Part shown: in pieces, positions 3,376-64,000 of the stretch
Numbering within the stretch: the stretch's first letter is position 1
Layout: the number at the start of each line of letters is the position of its first letter
From: Sminthopsis crassicaudata
Lineage: Eukaryota
NCBI RefSeq assembly: GCF_048593235.1
Contig: NC_133621.1
Coordinates: 177,741,958 to 177,805,957 of the forward strand
Reading direction: 5' to 3'
Length of the DNA: 64,000 bases
Notes under the pieces: model-generated
Told to the model about the DNA's origin: nothing
Seen by the model: only the letters and a program-made list of their open reading frames with translations
Databases searched by the model: none
Translations under genes and position numbers: made by a program

Positions 3376-4236
3376 ATCAGTATGTATTCTGAAAACCCAT
3401 GGTATGAGGACAGGATTTGGAGTAAAGAGAAAGATACCTTTGTCCTAAAGGTATCATGGGATTCACTAGATAATAGCGACCAGAATGTTGATTGGACCAT
3501 AAATTTAGATTGAATGAATCTCTACGTGGGAGAGATTTCTGAGATATGCCTGTCAGTGCAAGTGTACTTACTGTAAGTAAGGTGAGAGCCAGGTAAATGA
3601 ATTTTATCAATGGCTATTTTCCTCGGTAACTTTAACCAGTCAATCAACTAATCACTCAGTAAGCATGAATTAAGTACCTACTATAAGCAAAATACTAAAC
3701 TAGGTGCTAATGATTTTAAAAGTCTTTAAGTAGAGCTCATCCTCCTTTGAAAATCATCAGTTAATTTAACAAATATGGAGAGAGCCTAACATCAAAGACA
3801 ACACAGAAAAGTAACTCTGATTTTAATAATGTAGCTTTAGATAATCTTATCACTGGCTAGTTAAGGTCACTTTATAGTTTGAAGATATAAAAGGGGCCTT
3901 TCCGCCTTTATTTAGCTTTTTTGAAATTTTACATACATATATACATATATATTTACTACTACACAATCATGTCAGAAGGGAAGTGAAAAAGAATACTTTA
4001 TTCACAGCTGGTTCAAGTTTTGATTTAACTACTTATTATTTCTGTGACCTTAAACTTAATCTCTTTAATTCCTTTTTCTCATCTATAAAGACTTCTTATA
4101 GCCCTACATCTGATTCTATGATCATACATATCATGTATATCTACAAAACAGGTTTTATATGAATAAAGTTATATAAATGTGTAGAGGTGAAAATGTTTGG
4201 AAATTTTAAGTATTAATTTTTTTGTTTCTGTGTCAG

Positions 4237-6178: not shown

Positions 6179-6746
6179 TTATTTACTTTTGTTCTGCTGG
6201 ATTATGGTTTTTTGTTATAGCTTTTTATTTACAAGATATATGCATAGGTGATTTTTCAGTATTGACAGTTGCAAAACCTTTTATTCCAATTTCTCCCCTC
6301 CTTCCCCCCATCCCCTCTCCAGATGGCAGGTTGACCAATACATGTTAAATATGTTAAAGNNNNNNNNNNNNNNNNNNNNNNNNNNNNNNNNNNNNNNNNN
6401 NNNNNNNNNNNNNNNNNNNNNNNNNNNNNNNNNNNNNNNNNNNNNNNNNNNNNNNNNNNNNNNNNNNNNNNNNNNNNNNNNNNNNNNNNNNNNNNNNNNN
6501 NNNNNNNNNNNNNNGGTGTACTAAAAGAATCAGACTTTGAAACAGTGTACAATTAGTCTGTGAAGGAAATTAAAAATTCAGGCAGACAAAAATAGAGGGA
6601 TTGGGAATTCTATGAGGTGATTCATAGTCATCTCCCAGAGTTCTTTTCCTGGGTGTAGTTGGTTCAGTTCATTAATGCTCTATTGGAACTGATTTGGTTC
6701 CTCTCATTATTGAAGAGGGTCACATCTATCAGAATTGATCATCATA
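6179..6746 (-). mobile_element. 5'-truncated L1 3' end (interrupted by N gap)
   Basis: Terminus agctttttatttacaagatatatgcat; TSD TACTATTATTTAT at 6166-6178 and 6747-6759. Confidence 0.8.
6360..6514. other. Assembly gap
   Basis: Run of N inside an L1. Confidence 1.
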
Positions 6747-35370: not shown

Positions 35371-35568
35371 NNNNNNNNNNNNNNNNNNNNNNNNNNNNNN
35401 NNNNNNNNNNNNNNNNNNNNNNNNNNNNNNNNNNNNNNNNNNNNNNNNNNNNNNNNNNNNNNNNNNNNNNNNNNNNNNNNNNNNNNNNNNNNNNNNNNNN
35501 NNNNNNNNNNNNNNNNNNNNNNNNNNNNNNNNNNNNNNNNNNNNNNNNNNNNNNNNNNNNNNNNNNNN
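35371..35568. other. Assembly gap
   Basis: Run of N in GYS2 intron 10. Confidence 1.
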
Positions 35569-48836: not shown

Positions 48837-48983
48837 NNNNNNNNNNNNNNNNNNNNNNNNNNNNNNNNNNNNNNNNNNNNNNNNNNNNNNNNNNNNNNNN
48901 NNNNNNNNNNNNNNNNNNNNNNNNNNNNNNNNNNNNNNNNNNNNNNNNNNNNNNNNNNNNNNNNNNNNNNNNNNNNNNNNNNN
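48837..48983. other. Assembly gap
   Basis: Run of N in GYS2 intron 15. Confidence 1.
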
Positions 48984-50915: not shown

Positions 50916-51728
50916 ATTTAGTTGTCTCATAAAACTTCATTAAGAAGCTATTCAAAAAGACAAGTAATCTTTATTTTGTTTGGATGCTCAATATTAAAAT
51001 GAAACCACAGTAACCCTTATTTCAATAAAAATTTTTAATAAATCTGAGGAATTTAATGTTTAATCATACACAGTAGATGTATCCTTTTTTCAACACAGCC
51101 AGTATTGATAAAAACAGGTATTCTACCATTAATACCTATTCTAACAGCAATATGGGTAAGGGATGTGGAAGGACAGTTTTATTTAAAAAAACTAAACAGA
51201 GTTGCTTTTGTCAAAAGAGCTGAATAGATTCAGACTAAAAGGTATCATTGTCACCTTTAAGTGTGTCAACCTCCCATTCATAACATTTTCCTGACCTAAT
51301 AACTAACTCATTACAAAAAGGATCTATCAACAGAAGAGAATTTTAAGTGATCAACAGGGGATCATCCATTTAGAGCAGGAAGCAGTCTGAAAGGCTGCCT
51401 AATCCTATCCCTTCCTTTCACAGATGAACTGGAACCCAAGGTCATCAATTTTAAAAATTGGCTTTATTTAGGTTAAATAAATAATTGGCCTGATATTTGA
51501 ACCTATTCAAATCCAAATCTAGCACTCTTTCCACTGAAGTAGTAGACCTTTCCTGTTTTTGGTTACTCTATTGATCAATCTCTGAAGTCAGAATAAATTA
51601 CAGATTAGTGGTACCTGGGCAGATAGCATATGAAAGAATTCTATTAAGTAGACTTGTGCCAAGTGAGGTATAGCTCAATTTTTATAAAACTAGGAATACC
51701 TAGTAATTATAATGTTTGTTTCTGCCAG

Positions 51729-51944
51729 ACCCAAGGTTTTAAATTTCCAAGGCCTTCTTCAGTGCCACCTTCACCCACAAGCTCTCAACATTCCAGTCCT
51801 CATAACAGTGATGTAGAAGATGAGGATGAGAGATATGATGAAGAAGAAGAAGCTGAAAGGGATCGGATGAATATCAAATCTCCCTTTTTTCTAGGTCAAG
51901 TCCCCTATGAAAAGAAAAAGCAACATGGGGAACACAAGAATTGA
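51729..51944 (+). CDS. GYS2: GYS2 terminal coding exon 16 (216 bp incl. TGA)
   Basis: cag|ACC; [71 protein letters not shown]; SxxxS phosphosite ladder and the GYS2-type C-terminus. Confidence 0.97.
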
Positions 51945-52210: not shown

Positions 52211-54298
52211 ACACAATAAGCAAAATCCATTGTTTTGTTTTGCTGGACTTTATTTATTTAGATATTTCTCCCAGTTTCTCTACGTAAATATGATTAGTCA
52301 GTAAACTTAAAAATTTGGAAAACAGTCCATCAAGAAAAGCTGACAATATTTTTAAAAAATGCTTCTTTTAACATTAAAATGGTTCTCTATTTTTTTTTTT
52401 GAGGATCATAACAAAGTATCACCTATAATGTGCTAAATACAAAAATATAGTAATTGCCTTCCTACCAACTCAAAGTATTTTTTTCAAAGGGTCCAGACTC
52501 TAATAGTGCATGCTCCAGAGCTGATGATTTAAAAGTGAATCAATCAAAGAGTATTTATTGTAATTATTAATTGCCAGGTCCTATGTTAAGCACTAGGAAC
52601 TTAAATATAAAAGTAAGACAGTTCCTGCTCTCAAGGAACTTATAGTCTACTTGGGGTATGTATGAATTTTGTCAGTGCCTACACAAGAAAGGATTTCTCT
52701 TTTTAGCTGGTATAACTCAGAGTCTCATTATCTACAGGAAAATACCCATCTTTGGGCCTGAAGAATTAATTTTCAATTCAAATATAACTCCCTACAAACC
52801 AAAATTCATTTTCAAAATAATAATGGAAGGTATAAACTCATATATAAACTAGTACAAATAATTTTAAATTTCCTTAAATAGAAACCCTAATTCTTTGCAT
52901 AGGCCTCTTCTTCCATAGGAAATAAATGACAAAATCAAAATACACTAATATTCTGTGAATAATAATACTAACAAATGTGAAACCAACAATGTAAAAAAAC
53001 TTAACATCCATTTATTTTAATAACCAAGATTTACATTTTATATACATTATTTCTAGTTTTCCTCAACAACAATCCTATGAGTGCCACAAGTATTATCCCC
53101 ACTTTTATAGATGAATAAACTCAAACTTGAGAGATTATAAATGGCTTACTTAACTATTAAATATTAAGCTCTTCTGAGTCCAAGTCCAGGTGTCTTTCTA
53201 ATAGGCCGTGCTGACTTATCTTCAATTTTTATGGGTATACAAGATTAAAGTAATTTTGTTGTTATTAAATTTATAAAACTGAGCATGTCTGCTTCATGGT
53301 AGCAGTAATGGTTTTCAATCTCTATACGGCATGTTGAAACATACTATCGAATTATATAGATAAATATCTCAATCCTTTGTTGTCCTTTATTTTAATTGAT
53401 CGATGAGTATTTAATAAGAATGGATGAACAGATGAATGGGTGGTATCCATATTTATGGATACAAATAGAAATGACAAAAAAATCACAATCTTTGCTTTCA
53501 ATAAACTTATATTCTAATAGAGGTAAACAATATATATATGGAATAATAAATTCTATTGAGGGCAGAAAAATACTTACAAGATGGCCTAAGAGCAAAGTGG
53601 ATGGTAAAGCTAGAGAGTGAAGCAGAAAGGGGAATGGTAATACCTGGAAGTCTGGAAGACATAATGGTTATATAAATGACAAAGCTTTGATACATTTCTT
53701 TGCTCACCAAGATGAGGTAAGTCACACTGAACCTCAGTATGGAGGAGATGAAGTCTTCTTCAATATGTGTTTCATTTTTTTTGACACAAACAGAATTATG
53801 ATATAGTCCTTCGTCCACCCTGCTGCCATCATTGCTCCTCCATCATTCTCACAGCCCCAGGATGAAAAGGAGACAGGGCAAGTCTGTAGCTGTCACCACA
53901 ATGGCCCTTACCATGACTGAGCCCCTACTAATATCAAGCACTCTGTTAGGCATTGGATATATAAAGACAAAAATAGTTTCTGACCTGGAGAAATCACATG
54001 TACACTTATAAGTATATATTAAATTTATACACAAATAAGTATGTGATAATTATGTATTATTCAGGTTTTATATAAGATAGGACATTTGTGTTGAGCTCTG
54101 GCTGTTCAGGGGTTGTTCTGTGAGTGCTTAATAACTGCCAATCATTTTTAGATAGGAATTGTATTCACATAGTTATCAGGTTGAGGTATCGTGAGCATAT
54201 GCAATTTCTTATAATGCAGAGTTTTTCTTTGTTGGCTGACATTAAAATATACATAGATACACGAGAACAGATAATACAGATGTATGAATATGTATATA

Positions 54299-54527
54299 AG
54301 GCAGCTACTAAACCTAGAGTCAGGAAATCTCATCTTCTTGAATTCAAATCTAGCCTCAGACATTAGCTCTGTGACCTTGGGCAAGTTACTTAGCCCTGAT
54401 TGCCTCAGTTTCCTTTTCTTTAAAATAATTTGGAGAAGAAAATGACAAAATACTCCAGTATTTTTGCCAAGAAAACCCCAACTTTAGGGTCACAAAGAAT
54501 CAGGTTTGACTAAAAACTACTGAACAA
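54299..54527 (+). mobile_element. MAR1-like CORE-SINE
   Basis: gaattcaaatctagcctcagacattagctctgtgaccttgggcaag...tttgccaagaaaacccca. Confidence 0.78.
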
Positions 54528-55428
54528 TATATGTATATATTATAATATACATAAACATACACATATGTAATGTATTTATATATATGTATGCACAAATGTT
54601 CATTTTTGTAGTGTAGTACAATAGAAAAAAATATTAGATCAGGAACAGAGGAAGCTTGGTTCTGATCTCAACTTAATCATTATGTTATATATTACTTAGA
54701 CAAATCATTTCCAAAAATAGACCTCAGTTTCTGTAGCTGTAAAATGATAGAGTTAGCTAAATAATTCTAAGGTCTTTTCTAATTCTAATGTTCCATGATT
54801 CCATAAACATAAATAGGTAATGGCAGGATTTTTAGGATTTTAGAATTAAAACTAGCTTTAAAAGTTCTATTATAAACGTTATTGACAATACTAGTGGGAT
54901 AATTTTATAGAGGTAAGCTTTAAAGCAGTGTTATATACTATGAGGTTTAATGGTTGGAAACACTTGCTCTTCTTTTCATCTAAAGCCCTTGCCTGAGGAA
55001 TAATAAATGTTGATCCTTTCATCTTATACCTGGCTCAAATAAGGCTATGCTTTTCATTATATGTTTATATTTAGTAACTATATTTAGTTTAGTATGTTAA
55101 ACTAAAAAGTTATATAGGAATATTTTAATGGAGCTATTTTGGGATGTTTAATATGAATAATTCTAAGTAGACAAAATTATTTTGAAAACTTAATAAAGTT
55201 GCAATTGGAAGAAAAAAATGTATGTATGCCCTTTCTTTTCTATTGAAGGGAATTACATACCATGATAGTCAAGAATAAGACTATTGAGAAATGTGAAACC
55301 TGAATTCTAGTAATTTCCCAATTAGTTAGGAAAGACTCCTTTTAACAAAGCCAGTTTGGGTGGTCATGGAAGAAAGAGCTCAAATGGCATTCTAATATCC
55401 TCAGCCATGGCTAGCAATGGCAGCAGCT

Positions 55429-55520
55429 GAGGAAGAGGAGGAGGAAAAAAGGAGGAAAAGGAGGAGGAAGAGGAAGAGGAAGAGGAGGAGGAGGAGAAGG
55501 AAAAGGAAGAGAAGGGAGAG
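55429..55520. repeat. (GAG/AAG)n polypurine repeat
   Basis: About 90 nt composed only of G and A. Confidence 0.88.
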
Positions 55521-58184
55521 ATCCTTTATCCAGCATAGATTTTCAGAAGTAAACTTAATTTATAGAAGAAGAGACAGCAGTAGTCCTAGGGTCAAGAAAT
55601 CTGTTTTATATACCTATATGCTTAGAAGTCATGTAAAAATTTCTCGAGTAAAAAGGGGTCACAAGTGGAAAAAGTTTAAGAAGCTCTGATTTAGATTGTC
55701 AAATCCTGAAATAAATCAGACTCATAAAAGTGGGAAAAGGCATTTTAAATTAAGACAAAAGGGGTCATAAGACTGAGACACTGCCATGAATCTGAGTATG
55801 GGGTATTCAGAGGGAAAAAGTATAAAAAGGTTTTAAAACATTCAGGAGGAAAGAAGGGAGGGGGGCATGTGAGGAATTAGACCTGGCCATGCTACCCTTG
55901 ACAATCTAAGCAAGGAAGTCTGCTTCATTCTGGTCGTTTTTACTCTTCATGATCCAATTTGCCTAAATCTTGATGAGGGGTCTAAAATACTAGGCCAAAT
56001 TAGTTTCTGGATAAAGAATAAAGCAGGATACAGGATAAAGCAGAGCCCAGATTCCCAAGGTGGAGCCCAGTCCAACATATTTGAAAGTAAAGTGCCTTAG
56101 GAGTAGGAAGGCAATGACATTCCTGAGATTATTTTTGTCAGGATGGCTTTTTGACAGAGAAGAAAACATTGCATTTGATGTTGACAATATTAAAATTAAT
56201 TTTCCTGTCAAGACACTGCTCCCAGCGCTGTTGTCCCTGGTGGGGTGAAGCTGGAACATTGATGGAAAGATAGGAAGCCCCAAATATTAAGGACCTGGTA
56301 AAGGAAACCAAGACCAGTCCAGACTGTTCTCCTCTTAGCCAAGCTAGGGTCAAGGCCCTAGCTGAAATGTTCTCTTCTTATTCACAGCTTGTAATCATCT
56401 ATTTAATCTGTTGCATTGGTATGCTATTTTTTTAGAAGAACCTTTGGGTGTGACCAAATTTCTGGAGCCAGTCTGAACACTATTCCTTTATAATGTTCTT
56501 ACATGTCCTATGTAGACATGTTCCTGTAATTTATTTAAGGGATCAACAGAAATTTCTAAATTGACTGAAGCCTTTTCACTATAGTTGTAACACCTTTGAT
56601 TGATTTACTCAGTTTAGTGGAGTTCTATTCCCACCAAGGTGAGATGCCACAATAGCATTTTTATATAGTACTTTGAAACCTTTAAAATGCTGTATAAATG
56701 TTACCTATTGATATTGTTATTGCAGCTATTGTTATTTGATTGATTTACTCTATTGACCCACCATTTACAGAGGAATCATTAATAATAATAACAATAATAA
56801 TAATAGTGTTTATATAGGACTTTAAAGTTTGCAAAGGGCTTTACAAATATGTAATTTTATCCTCACAACAACTCTGGGAGGTAGGCACTATTATTATCCC
56901 CATTTTACAGATGAAGAAACTGAGTCAGACAGAGATTAAATAATTTAATGCAAGATCACAAAGCTAGTAGTAGTGCCTGAGGCCAGATGTCAACTCAGAT
57001 TTCTTGACTCTATCCAAGGTACCACAAAATTCCTGGGAGGTGGTTGGTTGGTAATTATCTTTCTGGAAGTTAGCATCAAGTTAGAATATGTCTGTTACAG
57101 TGTGACCATCAGTCCATCACAAGCTCAGAATGCTCTATCAGTTCAGGCACAAATAATCCAAGTGAGTATTTGGAGTCGATTAACAAAATTTGCATGTCTC
57201 ATGGGTTTTTTTGAGTCACTTTTTGCTCATAGAGCACAACACTTTCTTTGCTGAAGGCCCACCCTGCTGTGTCCCCTGTTACACAATCGATTGCAAGTTT
57301 TTCAGAGAGACCTTGAGAATGACCTTGTATTGCTTCTTCTGATCTCAGGTGAGCATTTGCCCTGTGTGAATTCTCCACAAAATAATCTATTAGGTAAACA
57401 TACATTTGGCATTCAATGGCCAGCCCATCAGAGTTGTGCTCTCTGCTATAGAATGTGAATGGTTGGAGGTTTAGTTTGAGAAAGGAGCTCAATGTCTTGT
57501 TCCTTATCCTGCCAAGTGATCTGCAGAATCTTCCTTAGGAGGTAGAGAATACAAATTGGCCTTGATAGAATTTAGTCTTTCTTTGGTTTCAACCAAGGAT
57601 TGCACACTTTGTGCACAAATCTAAGAGCTAAGAAATGAACAAATCTAAAAAATTGATGTTTCATACTGAGAGCTGAACTTTTAAATGAACACTGGTCTAC
57701 TTATTGGGGAGCACTAAAGGAGACAGTCACATAGGTCCACCTAGAAACAGCCATGCTTGAAGGCCACGTGGCATCTGTAAATCTTCAATGTGATGGTAAC
57801 TGAGTCCCTCTTTTCAGACTAGGTGTGTGAGGGGCTGGGTTTTGAGGTTACAGCTTCTTTTGGTTGATAACTAGGAATATATTCGAGATGAACCATACAA
57901 GTGACTAGTACCATGAAAATATTTTAATAGTCACTGATTGAGATGTCAACAAATTACAAGAAAGATCACTCGGAATATATTTGAGCTTTGAAATTTAAAA
58001 TACAATGACAAATTCAAAGTATGACATAATTTTGTGATCTAAATGAAGTATATAATAAAGAAAAAAAGAAGTAATGTTATCTGTTAAAATTATTTTTCAA
58101 TAATTATCCTTAAAAAACTGAAACTGAGATTACATTTGTAAGTATATATTCCTTTAGAATATAGACCATGTATAGACCATGTTT

Positions 58185-58190
58185 TTTATT
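58185..58190 (-). terminator. Candidate SPX polyadenylation signal
   Basis: TTTATT on + strand (AATAAA on -), about 55 nt past the SPX stop codon. Confidence 0.35.
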
Positions 58191-58244
58191 CACATAAATA
58201 ATGGCTTCAACAGAAATGTAAGGGGAATTTTTTAGTAAATTGGG

Positions 58245-58309
58245 TCATTTTCTCCAGTTTAGTAAATTATCTTCCAAGAATCTTGATTGATCAAAGTTTA
58301 CTGCTCTAG
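58245..58309 (-). CDS. SPX: SPX terminal coding exon 6 (65 bp incl. TGA)
   Basis: minus strand ttttcttacag|CT AGA GCA GTA AAC TTT GAT...TGG AGA AAA TGA; (A)RAVNFDQSRFLEDNLLNWRK* versus human DEEKNFDQTRFLEDSLLNW* (recalled). Confidence 0.92.
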
Positions 58310-59678
58310 CTGTAAGAAAATAAAATAAAATTATAAATTTTGTTTTAAAGCCCAGTACAATCATCAAGGAAATATTATCTGAGTTTAAGGTTCTATGTCC
58401 CCAGATTCTATCTCACCTTCTTCTTCCTCCTCTCCTTCCTGCAAATATTTATCCATCTTGACTTTTCAAGGGTTTTCATTTTGTTAATCATTCTGTCCTT
58501 CATTTACTTTTCTGCCCTTTGGTTCAACAATGTTATATTTTTCAGTTCTTCAGCTTCTTCCATTTCCTTCATGGGCTTACAACAGGATTCTTTCAAAATT
58601 TTTTCTGACTAAACTTTTCCTAGCAGAGATCAGCTGTTTCTAAGCCTTTAGTGATCATTTTAATCATTAAAGATTCCCAAGTTTGACTTCTGATCGGCAT
58701 AGTTCCACCTGACCATTTCCTGCCATCATTGCAAACTGAACTTGACTTTCTAAATTTTTTCATTTTCTAGTGATGGTGTTACCTTCACTTTTGTAATAAT
58801 ATCTCATATGTTTTTTTTTTCCATTTCACTTATAATAAGCCTCTTAAAGTTCAGAGGGAATCATACATCTGAAGCTAGCAGAGACCTTAAAACCATTATG
58901 ATCATCTTCTTCATTTTGCAGTTGAGAAAATGGAGGCACAGAAAGGTACAGATAGCAAGTGGTTGGAGCAGAGTTTGAACACAAATCTTCCTTACCCCAG
59001 GTCCTGTTTCCTATCTACTATGCCACACTGAATCAGTGTGGGTCTGCAACAATAGATCATTAGCAAAATGTTCCTGCTTCCCATACAACATTTTTATTGG
59101 TTTTCAGATTCAAGAAATAGTTACCAGATCATAGTAGACATCTACTCAACCATTCATTTTATAGATGAGGAAACTAAGGTCTAACAAAATTAGACATTTT
59201 GTCTAAGATCCCACAACTACTAAGTGACAAAGTCAGCTTTTGACCTCTGCTTCCCAGATTACAAAGCCCATGCTTTTTCCACTGAGCCATTCCTGTGATA
59301 TAAAATTAGCTTTAGATCGATATATCCTTTATATTTGCTCATCTCTGTGTAACAAAATCATTATCCCTAGTGGTACCCCTCTTAAAAATACAAATTATCA
59401 CTTTAATTTCTGAAAGGGAGACAAAAAATATTCTGAAGTAACAAGTTCTAGGGTGTGATAAATTATTAAATTCATATTAAGCTATATAATCCGAGGAAGG
59501 AATTTTTTGTTTTGTTTTATTTGTTTTGAAGAATTATTATAACAAATATTCTAGCCTCTTCACAATAAACATTGCTATGAATTTGGGGGCTATAATTATA
59601 AAAATTAAAAAATTAAGGGAGTTCAAACAAGAATGAAATTACTTCAAAAGGTCTGATTGTCTTGGAAGGATTCATTCT

Positions 59679-60090
59679 TGGAAGTGGATATCTTCAATAA
59701 AGAGAAGATCTAATTCAGTTCCAATTGATCAGAATCAGCTACACCCAGAGAAGGAACACTGGGAAATAAGTGTAAACTGTTTGCATTTTTGTTTTTCTTC
59801 CCAGGTTATTTTTGCCTTCTGAATCCAATTCTTCCTGTGCAACAAGAAATTTGGTTCTGCACCCATATATTGTATCTAGGATATAACATGTATGGGAATG
59901 CCTGGCATCTAGGGGAGGAGATGGAGGAAAAGAGGGGAAAATTTGGAACAGAAGTGAGTGCAAGGGATAATTTTGTAAAAAAAAATTACCCATGCATATG
60001 TACTGTCAAAAAAAGTTATAATTATAAAGTTAATAAAAAAATAAAGTATCAAAAAAAAACCATCAAAAAAAGAGAAAAAAAAAAAAAAGA
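59679..60090 (+). mobile_element. 5'-truncated young L1 3' end in SPX intron 5
   Basis: 3' UTR text shared with the 38851-39727 copy; patterned A tail; 13-bp TSD AAGGATTCATTCT at 59666-59678 and 60091-60103. Confidence 0.9.
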
Positions 60091-60111
60091 AAGGATTCAT
60101 TCTATATTTAC

Positions 60112-60198
60112 CTTCTTCTGGTGGTTTCTGTAGGGACTCAAAGAACATGGCTGCAGCTTCAGAAATAAGTATTGGGTTTGAACTTTGGCTGCGCTTTT
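60112..60198 (-). CDS. SPX: SPX coding exon 5 (87 bp)
   Basis: minus strand cag|AA AAG CGC...GAA G|gtaaat; (E)KRSQSSNPILISEAAAMFFESLQKPPEE versus human ERRSPNPQLLTIPEAATILLASLQKSPE (recalled); phase 1 at both ends. Confidence 0.9.
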
Positions 60199-61319
60199 CT
60201 GGAGAAATAAAATGTAAACAAATGTTCTCATCACATAATATTAATAGATTATTAATAATTAGATTAATTAGATAACATTCACATAGTGCTTTCTTTGCTT
60301 TACAATTAATTATTACTTGATTTGATCCTTGTAAGGATCCTGAGAGTTAAATAAACAATTTTACAATTTCTGTTTCTTAGCTGAGGTAATTTGGGCTAAT
60401 GGGTTCAAATGACTTGCCCAAAATCACACAGCTAGTAAAGTATCTGAACACATTTGAACTCAGTTCTTTCTGATTCCCAGATCTACATCAACTGCACAAT
60501 TTGACTTCTTCATGAATAGACTGATCCAATAAATATGGTGAAAAGCAAAATCTGTATAAAATAATAGATTTTCAAGGCTCAGCGGGTGGCTCCCTTATTT
60601 TATTTAATATACCAAATTTTGAGCATCTGAATGGCTTCAGTGGATAGAGTATGGGACTGGGGAGTCTAGAAGAAAGGAATTCAAAACTGTGAGCAGGTTG
60701 CAATTAACTGCCTTTGGCCTTAGTTTCCTTATCATAATGAAAGGAACTGGCCTTGATAGCCTTTAAGCTTCCTTCCAGCGCTAAATCTATGATTCTATTA
60801 AAGGACTTAGGACACTTTCTTGGAAATTTATACTGTGACAAAACCTAGAGTAATTTTTCATTGTGAAAATTTAGAGAGGTAATATGATATATTGAATAGA
60901 ACCAGTATTGTATGAAAGAACAAGTCTGAGCCTTTCCTATCTATCTGACTAGGATCTTTTAGATAAAATCATGCTCTGGAGAGTGCCCTATATCTTTTTT
61001 TTTGTTGTTGTTTAATATGTTTTCAATTCTGATTTGATGAAAAATTCATCAACTCACTACGAGTGTGATAACTCTTCATTTGTAATAATTGTTAGTATAT
61101 AAAATAGATGTGTCTGATAAATGCTAAAAATAATGTTAAACTTAACTTGGCATAAGGAAAACTGTTTTCTTTATGAAATTTGATGTAGGAAATTTTAAAT
61201 CTGAAAATCAGTGGCAATACTATAAAACAAGAAGTTTGTATAAATTGTAGATCTGTGAGGTCCCTTTCAGATCTAAAGTTCTATGATTCTAATTGCTTTG
61301 TTTAACAATAAAAAAATTT

Positions 61320-61460
61320 TGGCTAACTAAGTGGCTCAGTGGATAGTGCACTGGTCTTATAGTCAGGAAGATCTGAATTAAAATCTTGCTCTCACATTTA
61401 TTAGCTGTGTGAGCCTGGTTAAGACACAGATTGCCTCCTTAAAAAAAACCAAAAAACAAA
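61320..61460 (+). mobile_element. CORE-SINE (WSINE1/MIR-like)
   Basis: ggctcagtggatagtgcactgg...gtcaggaagatctgaatt...gattgcctcc plus A tail. Confidence 0.65.
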
Positions 61461-63730
61461 ACCATGAACAAAAATTACAAAATGCTTGGATATCAATTTA
61501 ATCTCATCCAAGGAAAACATATTGAATACTTGTCAAGTACTTAGTATTATATACGATATGTTCTGTACTCACTGGTAGGCATTCAGTAATCTAATATTTT
61601 TCCATAATAAGTGGAAAGTTCACTGGTATAAATGCTGAAATTTGGTGGCAAATTCCTAGCTGTTCTGCCCTAAGTTACAATTTCAATAAGGATGTACCAC
61701 AAACAGCAATAAAAACATGTGTGCTACAATTCTTGCTTTTCCACAATATTTTAGGACACTATTTAGTACTACATAGGACATTTTTTTTTTTTTTTGCAAA
61801 AGTGGAGATAGGTGTGCTTTAATAAAAAAAAAAAAAAAAGCCCAACGATTTAATGCTTACTGTGAGTAGTTTTGAAAAGATCATTTTAAGTAGGAAAATT
61901 AGGAGAGGAAGTAGGAATGCATCTGAAACTAAAAATCTGGCTACACCTATTATAATAGTGTCATAGGTTAGCTAGCTTTTCTTCTCTTCCTGAATATTTT
62001 TCTCTTCCTGAAATGGTTGCCTAACCTCTCTGCGATTAAATATGAACTTCTCCATTGAGATTTCAAAGTCCTGCACAATCTGGACCCAACCTGCCTTTCC
62101 AGTCTTATTATTTTTCACTTTTATTAATCTCTGAACCAGATAACTGGCCTTCTTGCTGTGCAATGATACATGAAACTAGATCTACCCCCTAGCTCTCTTC
62201 CATGCATGGGAATACCCAAGAGGCATTTTTGTGCCTCTTAGAGTCTCCCCTTTCATTCAAAGCTTTGCTCAGGGTACACCTTCTACCTGAACCCTTTCTT
62301 GACCAACCTTAACTGCCATTGTCTCCCCTTGAAATCTCTACCTTGTATTATTCTAAACATACTTATTATGTAGATAACATTTGACCCCCAAAGAATGTAA
62401 GTGCTTTAAAAAGTTTATTTTTGTATAATATCTCCAGCACTTTCCCATCTCAGATGCATTATAGTAAGTAGCTTAATAAGTGTTTGTTGGTTGACATTTT
62501 CATATATAATATATATATAAATAGTATGCATATATAACATCCACATATAATATGAGATACAATATAAATATATCCATGAATATATATAGATATATATAAT
62601 ATACTTGTACATAGATATAATATGCACAGTTCATTTGTGCAGAAAATATGCAGTGAGTTAACTCCTTCCCTTCAATATGGATCAACATCTGTTCTGAAAC
62701 TTAAGAGTCTGAAATAGTTTAAATGACCTGTCCAAGATCATGTAGTTGCTATTGTATCAGAGGAAGGACTGCAATCTAAGTCTTTCTGACTGCAGTACTG
62801 GCTTTCTATTCACTATGCCACCTTTATCTCATTATAAATATGCTGGCACTTAAATCTTATGCTCAGTATCAACCTTTTCAAACACAGAAGAATAGATCAC
62901 ATTTAGACTTTTAAGAATGAAGTTTAAACAAAAGTTATTTTAATGAAGTAACAATGTTATTTTTCCTAAACATCTAAGACTACTCCTCCTACCACATTTT
63001 AAGCACATCTGCTTTTGGTTACCCAAATATCTTACTTATCTGCCTGTTGATTTTGGCACATTTTGCAAAACTGTCTGATTTTCATCCCTGACTGCTCCCC
63101 TTTATGACTGCAGTTGTTTTGTAGTTGGTAAGATAAACAGTAACCACAAGAAAATACCCCACTTTAGCACAGGGCTAAGTTATCTTTTCTTGTGGAAATG
63201 GATTTTTTTGGGGCATGAAACCTATCTCCTTTCCTTGATATAGTTCTTAGCACTGTGCCTCGCACATAATAAGTGCTTTATAAATATCAGTTGACTGATT
63301 GATAGGATCAGTGGACAGCCCAGTGAATTTGATTCAATATATACACAATTCTCATAATTCTCATACCAACTCTACACTTATTTTGTTACATTACTCTGAT
63401 TTCCCAATTTCTGTTTTTTTAACCTGAAAATGAAGTAATTGGACTTTATGGTTTCTAAAATCCTTTCTTTTCCAGTCCAACATTTTATGATGTAGTGAAT
63501 CACAGCAAAGTATGCTCCCCCTTTCTAGGATGCAGTGGAAAGAACACTGGTTTGGAGTCAAGGGACCTTGGTCACTTGCTGATCCTGAATAAGTTATGTA
63601 ATTTCTTTAGATATCAGTCCCTTCTCCCTATGATGAGTTTTAAATTATTGAATTATCTAATAATCAGACAAAATAATTTCTGCTGTTCCTTCCAGCTTGA
63701 AAGCATCTGGTGTCTTTGTGTTTCTCTTAC

Positions 63731-63793
63731 CCAGCTGTAGTCTGTTGTAGAGATCTTTCCTCCTGCTCTCCTCTGAGATGAAGTGGCGGCCTT
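63731..63793 (-). CDS. SPX: SPX (spexin) coding exon 4 (63 bp)
   Basis: minus strand tag|AA GGC CGC CAC TTC...CTG G|gtaaga; (Q)GRHFISEESRRKDLYNRLQL, aligning with human QGRRFISDQSRRKDLSDRPLP (recalled); convergent position after GYS2 matches human synteny. Confidence 0.93.
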
Positions 63794-64000
63794 CTATAAG
63801 ACAAAACAAGAAAAACCTATAGTAGTTTCAAATGGCTTCTGTGGGATGCTGACTGCAGCTTTGGAGCCGGGCAGGCAAATTGAATGACTTCTCTCTTATA
63901 CTTATACAATGTGTAAGACACACACTGAGGAGGATGGCTTGGCCCTACTAAGTAACAGGGAAGGGAACAGAGAGAAATAATCTCTGATTTCACTTGATAA

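Follow-up and report, generated by a model that had tools for sequence, protein, structure and literature searches.

The window analysed in this study, a stretch of 64,000 nucleotides from the genome of the fat-tailed dunnart (Sminthopsis crassicaudata), contains two genes in convergent orientation. Most of the window is occupied by GYS2 on the plus strand, where six or more exons matching glycogen synthase (PF05693, lowest E-value 4e-29) were identified between positions 4210 and 51941, including an acidic C-terminal exon at approximately 51648-51941. Runs of N are present at 1115-1246, 6360-6514, 35371-35568, and 48837-48983. The gene on the minus strand is the spexin gene SPX, of which exons 4, 5, and 6 lie within the window. 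The region from 52245 to 64000 is 100% identical over 11,756 bases to locus L001 of the same species (GCA_048593235.1, CM109185.1), and this locus also provides exon 3, located approximately 440-500 bases past the end of the window.

Exon 4 (63731..63793, minus strand) is composed of 2 + 60 + 1 nt, namely the last two bases of the codon for Gln14 of the mature peptide, 60 nt encoding GRHFISEESRRKDLYNRLQL, and the first base of a Glu codon. Read on the minus strand, it begins with AA GGC CGC CAC TTC ATC TCA GAG GAG AGC AGG AGG AAA and ends with CAG CTG G, followed by the intron 4 donor GT (gtaaga; 63729..63730), and its frame translates to EGRHFISEESRRKDLYNRLQL. The intron 3 acceptor AG (63794..63795) follows a pyrimidine-rich tract and is kept in 11 species. 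Because exon 3 (L001:6606-6663) ends in AAG GGG ACT C|gtaagt and exon 4 begins with AA, the Gln14 codon is split as C|AA; the same split across GT...AG is found in the dunnart and 10 other species and agrees with the published gene structure, in which the Gln14 codon lies across the junction of exons 3 and 4, the two exons that encode the 14-mer (PMC6593056). Directly after the acceptor, the codons GGC CGC CAC (63783..63791, minus strand) encode Gly-Arg-His, as read from the sequence, from the RefSeq model XP_074124965.1, and from the codon alignment, with Gly as the amide donor, Arg as the single basic residue at P1, and His at P1', where most vertebrates have Arg. The next basic cluster downstream, AGG AGG AAA (Arg-Arg-Lys; 63756..63764, minus strand), is an alternative cleavage point, and an R/K-K pair occurs there in all marsupials aligned. 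The preliminary description of this DNA, which was made from the letters of the window, had named the gene SPX, placed the mature-peptide exon outside the window and a split Gln codon at the exon 3/4 junction, read Gly-Arg-His (63791-63783) immediately after the exon 4 acceptor as a monobasic site, and pointed to SRRK as the next basic cluster (Arg-Arg-Lys at 63764-63756). All of these readings hold: exon 3 of L001 confirms the split codon and the position of the mature-peptide exon, and neither Gly-Arg-Arg nor Gly-Lys-Arg stands at the C-terminal end of the 14-mer in the dunnart.

Exon 5 (60112..60198, minus strand; 2 + 84 + 1 nt) encodes (E)KRSQSSNPILISEAAAMFFESLQKPPEE, opening with a Lys-Arg dibasic site (60196-60191) and including the stretch SEAAAMFFESLQKPPEE. 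The coding part of exon 6 (58245..58309, minus strand) encodes (A)RAVNFDQSRFLEDNLLNWRK, an exact match to residues 99-119 of XP_074124965.1, and ends in ...FLEDNLLNWRK before the stop codon TGA (58247-58245). A polyadenylation signal, AATAAA, was read from the sequence at 58185..58190 (minus strand), approximately 55 nt past the stop codon. The precursor thus terminates in ...LLNW-Arg-Lys-stop (Arg-Lys at 58248-58253, minus strand in the dunnart), and every marsupial with a full-length model has this extra Arg-Lys, whereas the spexin precursors of placentals, birds, reptiles, and frogs stop at ...NW. A carboxypeptidase would be expected to trim the two additional residues. The 5' leader of the dunnart gene, which lies beyond the window, contains a short upstream frame, MERCPLTGKI followed by a stop codon (L001:5904-5936), 5' of the SPX start codon. 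The models of the bilby (P0009) and the koala (P0024) start at the ATG homologous to this upstream frame and have no signal-peptide exon; this start is probably an annotation artefact.

Several lines of evidence identify the minus-strand gene. The stop-free frame of exon 4 alone matches the Pfam Spexin family (PF15171) at 33 bits, against a cut-off of 27, and corresponds exactly to residues 50-69 of the RefSeq protein XP_074124965.1. The frame of exon 5 scores 21.9 bits (cut-off 27), and a homology search with it returned one protein, the 119 aa spexin XP_074124965.1 of Sminthopsis crassicaudata. The window exons were searched singly, and full-length comparisons were made with this database protein (P0001), which is the same as the translations of all three window exons, scores 133.7 bits against PF15171, and carries ...KGTQGRHFISEES... 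across the exon 3/4 junction with G-R-H included. Moreover, the PF05693 exons belong to GYS2 and run convergently with SPX, and the gene in the window is therefore the orthologue of spexin SPX1. In the human genome, SPX adjoins GYS2 in the same convergent arrangement.

Comparison with other species shows that the Gly-Arg-His site is not peculiar to the dunnart. A search with the dunnart protein retrieved spexin from eight other marsupials, and in the resulting alignment of nine species in five orders, none of the nine has GRR, while frogs, a turtle, and placentals in the same alignment do. GRH is found in Sminthopsis, Sarcophilus, and Antechinus (Dasyuromorphia), in the bilby Macrotis (Peramelemorphia), and in the opossum Monodelphis (Didelphimorphia); GRQ is found in the brushtail possum Trichosurus, the wombat Vombatus, and the koala Phascolarctos, all Diprotodontia; and GQQ is found in Dromiciops (Microbiotheria). 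The last of these was read in a single assembly of Dromiciops gliroides, in which the exon 4 codons GGA CAG CAG (L004:2653-2661) give Gly-Gln-Gln, a site without any basic residue, and the rest of the spexin precursor is intact and conserved. In the wombat, the genome has a normal exon 5 encoding KRRQSLNPIPISEAVTMFFEFLQKPPEE (Vombatus ursinus, L007:10879-10962), whereas in the RefSeq model P0016 (93 aa) exon 4 is followed by other sequence; the gene seems to have been modelled wrongly, rather than the protein being truncated.

A second search, started from a placental protein and represented by the best 120 of its 302 matches, brought the set to 142 proteins. Among its 130 non-marsupial entries, eight are models in which exon 4 is skipped or the frame continues into an intron, leaving 122 with canonical splicing, and 115 of these 122 have GRR. 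The other seven read GRH (Peromyscus leucopus and the bats Saccopteryx leptura and Rhynchonycteris naso), GHR (Apodemus sylvaticus and Nycticebus coucang), GRP (a seal cluster), and GCR (the kakapo). In the armadillo, FLS is read where FIS is expected past the cleavage site. The 31 full-length representatives at 50% identity with a G-x-x site all have GRR except for two fish paralogues with GHR. Likewise, a scan of 1.84 billion representative proteins found GRR in lizards, birds, and fish, and GHR or KHH only in percomorph spexin-1b-like paralogues. Monotreme spexin was not found by the dunnart-protein search, among the best 120 of the 302 placental-seed matches, or among the named representatives (lizards, birds, a caecilian, and fish). 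The preliminary description had treated the change as one of "this lineage", and this part of it does not stand: none of the nine marsupials has the second Arg, and GRH recurs in a few placentals. That GRH is already common in marsupials, a circumstance it had listed as counting against its own reading, can be seen in public protein records.

GGC CGC CAC is also read in Antechinus flavipes and Sarcophilus harrisii, each assembled independently, and the identity of the codons in separate dasyurid assemblies excludes an assembly error or a private allele in practice. An assembly error or rare allele was accordingly ruled out: three dasyurid genera share the codons, and the bilby and the opossum share the residue. 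A novelty confined to dasyurids has next to no probability, being refuted by the marsupial alignment and codons, with nothing in its favor beyond the single window.

The history of the lost Arg was reconstructed at the codon level after SPX loci from six further marsupials and four outgroups had been added, the opossum and the koala being represented by their proteins. The codons for Gly, Arg, and the P1' residue are GGC CGC CAC in dasyurids, GGC CGT CAC in the bilby, GGT CGT CAA in the brushtail possum, and GGC CGT CAA in the wombat, and the site reads GGA CAG CAG in Dromiciops. Among the outgroups, elephant and armadillo have GGG CGC CGC, the turtle has GGA CGT CGA, and Peromyscus leucopus has GGC CGC CAT. 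Since CGC is found in two basal placental lineages, a single G>A transition at a CpG would explain the His codon CAC, and the outgroup codons CGC CGC of elephant and armadillo support the CGC>CAC change of CpG type proposed in the preliminary description. That the opossum shares His with two Australian orders, with Gln as a second step, would place Arg>His on the marsupial stem. The likeliest history, which we infer from these codons, is thus Arg>His on the stem followed by His>Gln transversions, giving CAA in diprotodonts and CAG in Dromiciops. The second Arg of G-R-R would have been lost once, through the CpG transition, and never regained; His would have been kept in the opossum, dasyurids, and bilby and replaced by Gln in diprotodonts, and Dromiciops would have lost the first Arg too.

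The mature peptide also differs from the published form. The canonical tetrapod 14-mer, NWTPQAMLYLKGAQ, does not occur in the marsupials aligned: M7I and A13T, encoded by exon 3 outside the window, are present in all nine species, dasyurids add A6T, and the koala adds Q14E. Dasyurids therefore differ at positions 6, 7, and 13, and the other marsupials at 7 and 13. On the other hand, Trp2, Tyr9, Leu10, and Gly12 (exon 3, L001) are invariant in the alignment; the legend to Fig. 2 of PMC6593056 lists the conserved positions of the 14-mer. Published work describes the spexin 14-mer as the same in every tetrapod (PMC7044129), and the abstract of PMC6593056 describes variation only at position 13, in teleosts. 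M7I and A13T in marsupials, with A6T in dasyurids, contradict the published identity in all tetrapods. Met7 and Ala13 belong to a set of four residues reported to control potency at GALR3 but not at GALR2 (PMC4764904).

Marsupial SPX is under purifying selection and is not decaying. In each of the seven marsupial loci, the exon lengths, GT-AG splice sites, reading frame, and signal peptide have been preserved, and pairwise Nei-Gojobori dN/dS among the seven marsupials, summed exon by exon, ranges from 0.10 to 0.56 and is mostly about 0.3. At the cleavage site itself, the Gly codon (GGC, GGT, and GGA) and the Arg codon (CGC and CGT) show synonymous turnover, with the residues kept in eight of the nine marsupials; this pattern would fit a continued use of Gly-Arg, and the counts for the two codons alone (approximately 3-4 synonymous changes vs. 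one replacement) are not statistically significant.

Taken together, the Gly-Arg-His site is best explained as a genuine, fixed, and ancient substitution in marsupials, which probably still make the amidated 14-mer, perhaps less efficiently; we assign this reading as a whole, including the amidated product predicted from the sequences, a probability of roughly 0.6. Prohormone convertases would cut after the single Arg, K-G-T-Q-G-R|H, with Lys at P6, a small Gly at P2, and a non-aliphatic His at P1'. The cut would leave ...Gln-Gly-Arg, from which carboxypeptidase E (CPE) would remove Arg to give a Gly-extended intermediate of mass 1718.899, and PAM would turn the Gly into an amide, giving in dasyurids NWTPQTILYLKGTQ-NH2 with a monoisotopic mass of 1660.894. 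The efficiency at G-R-H might be somewhat below that at G-R-R. The empirical rules for monobasic sites reportedly set out by Devi in 1991 call for a basic residue at one of P4, P6, or P8 and exclude aliphatic residues at P1', aromatic residues at P2, and Cys in the vicinity. The dunnart site complies with these rules, with Lys at P6, His at P1', Gly at P2, and no Cys within 20 residues. A cut between Arg and His also has a familiar counterpart, as the first residue of GLP-1(7-36) is His and its release is an R|H cut. The site from which GLP-1(7-36)amide is released is monobasic (PMC6497767). Furthermore, the Fig. 2 legend of a spexin review notes rat spexin as an exception with GHR in place of GRR (PMC6593056), and as the peptide is studied as active in the rat, the full GRR is dispensable there.

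A difficulty for a monobasic cut is P4, which is Thr and not Arg, the strongest helper for monobasic cleavage. GHRH, NPFF, and RFRP, which are amidated peptides from G-R-X sites, all have Arg at P4. The general point on Arg at P4 of monobasic sites is made in PMC4062910. The same Thr is in keeping with a different outcome, in which the site is bypassed and the precursor is cut at RRK (63764-63756), yielding a 23-residue non-amidated form (the 14-mer plus GRHFISEES) with a mass of 2704.361 Da, or is left largely uncut. Such an outcome seems to us unlikely, at perhaps less than half the weight of the amidated 14-mer. Dromiciops, with GQQ and no basic residue at the site of a precursor that is still intact and conserved, and the koala, with Glu replacing Gln14, speak for it and against the monobasic cut, and together suggest that a strict need for the cut may be relaxed in marsupials. 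The FISEE...R/K-K stretch is as conserved as the 14-mer among marsupials; however, the FISxxS stretch is equally conserved in GRR species, and its conservation is therefore no argument for an extended spexin. In eight of nine marsupials, Gly and Arg have persisted through synonymous turnover even though the Arg codon contains a mutable CpG. Both this retention and the known monobasic precedents weaken the suggestion of the preliminary description that processing is less efficient or that an extended peptide is made. The literature is divided on the importance of spexin amidation. Amidated and non-amidated goldfish spexin are both active, and transfected cells reportedly secrete spexin mainly as the full-length protein, whereas spexin analgesia in the mouse was reported to need amidation (PMC6593056). 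Galanin, a related ligand, accommodates an extended C-terminal tail, but docking models put the C-terminal residues in the receptor pocket (PMC8285161).

Two further readings concern the gene as a whole. The clade may have remodelled spexin signalling, with stem loss of the dibasic site and replacement of Met7 and Ala13, followed later by the changes in Dromiciops, Q14E in the koala, and A6T in dasyurids; the ligand would then be differently processed (extended or non-amidated) or have a shifted selectivity between GALR2 and GALR3, possibly co-evolving with its receptors. We consider this doubtful, slightly more so than the bypass of the site. Alternatively, SPX might be decaying or under relaxed constraint, the eroded site and changed peptide marking an early loss of function, as the accumulation in one clade of the dibasic-site loss, M7I and A13T in all species, A6T in dasyurids, Q14E in the koala, and R>Q in Dromiciops could suggest. 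However, the frames, splice sites, and signal peptide of the seven loci are intact, dN/dS of 0.10-0.56 is well under 1, and Trp2, Tyr9, Leu10, and Gly12, which are critical for the receptor, do not vary, which makes decay very improbable. A pseudogene was rejected on the same intact exons, splice sites, and dN/dS values.

A genuine and ancient substitution with probably retained amidation remains the preferred reading. The site is an annotated, clade-wide state and no lineage-specific lesion; it is ancient, shared, recurs elsewhere, and is probably compatible with normal processing. A literature search found no paper linking spexin with any marsupial, and what the literature on spexin and monobasic processing discusses is confined to the usual flanks and to GHR as the exception in the rat. 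Both the altered 14-mer and the disappearance of the dibasic site across the clade thus appear to be undescribed in the literature, while the sequence itself is already in RefSeq and UniProt. Marsupials break two generalisations about spexin, the 14-mer identical among tetrapods and the conserved dibasic flanks, and do so under purifying selection. They offer a natural experiment on the weight of G-R-R and amidation, and on the role of positions 7 and 13 in GALR2 vs. GALR3 selectivity, and two of the species, the dunnart and the opossum, are kept as laboratory animals.

In comparison with the canonical SPX1 precursor of placentals, birds, reptiles, and amphibians, in which the 14-mer is flanked by RR/KR and GRR, the dunnart gene shares the exon layout, the split Gln14 codon, the GYS2 neighbor, and PF15171, and keeps the N-terminal RR, the RRK and KR sites further downstream, and the C-terminal LLNW. 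It differs by the His at P1', which makes the site monobasic, by A6T, M7I, and A13T, and by the extra C-terminal Arg-Lys after LLNW. A natural loss of one Arg of GRR is likewise seen in the GHR of rat SPX1, given in the Fig. 2 legend of PMC6593056, and of Apodemus sylvaticus and Nycticebus coucang. The rat, however, loses the first Arg, which leaves His beside Gly after the cut, whereas the marsupial G-R-H loses the second and would present a clean Gly-Arg end to CPE and PAM. The N-terminus of GLP-1(7-36)amide (PMC6497767) resembles the dunnart site in its single Arg at P1, His at P1', and an upstream basic residue at an even position, and PC1/3 cuts there efficiently in vivo. It belongs to another precursor, has its helper basic residues at P7/P8 rather than at P6 as in the dunnart, and the cut makes an N-terminus rather than an amidation substrate. 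The teleost spexin-1b-type paralogues (tilapia Spx1b, PMC7044129; Sphaeramia orbicularis, P0193; Thunnus, P0186) share Met7>Ile with marsupials. Those of Sphaeramia and Thunnus parallel marsupials further in the erosion of their C-terminal signal (GHR and KHH), and tilapia Spx1b is active on Galr2b (PMC7044129). The teleost paralogues are duplicates specific to their lineages and coexist with a canonical Spx1a, whereas marsupials, as far as the searches show, have the altered gene alone.
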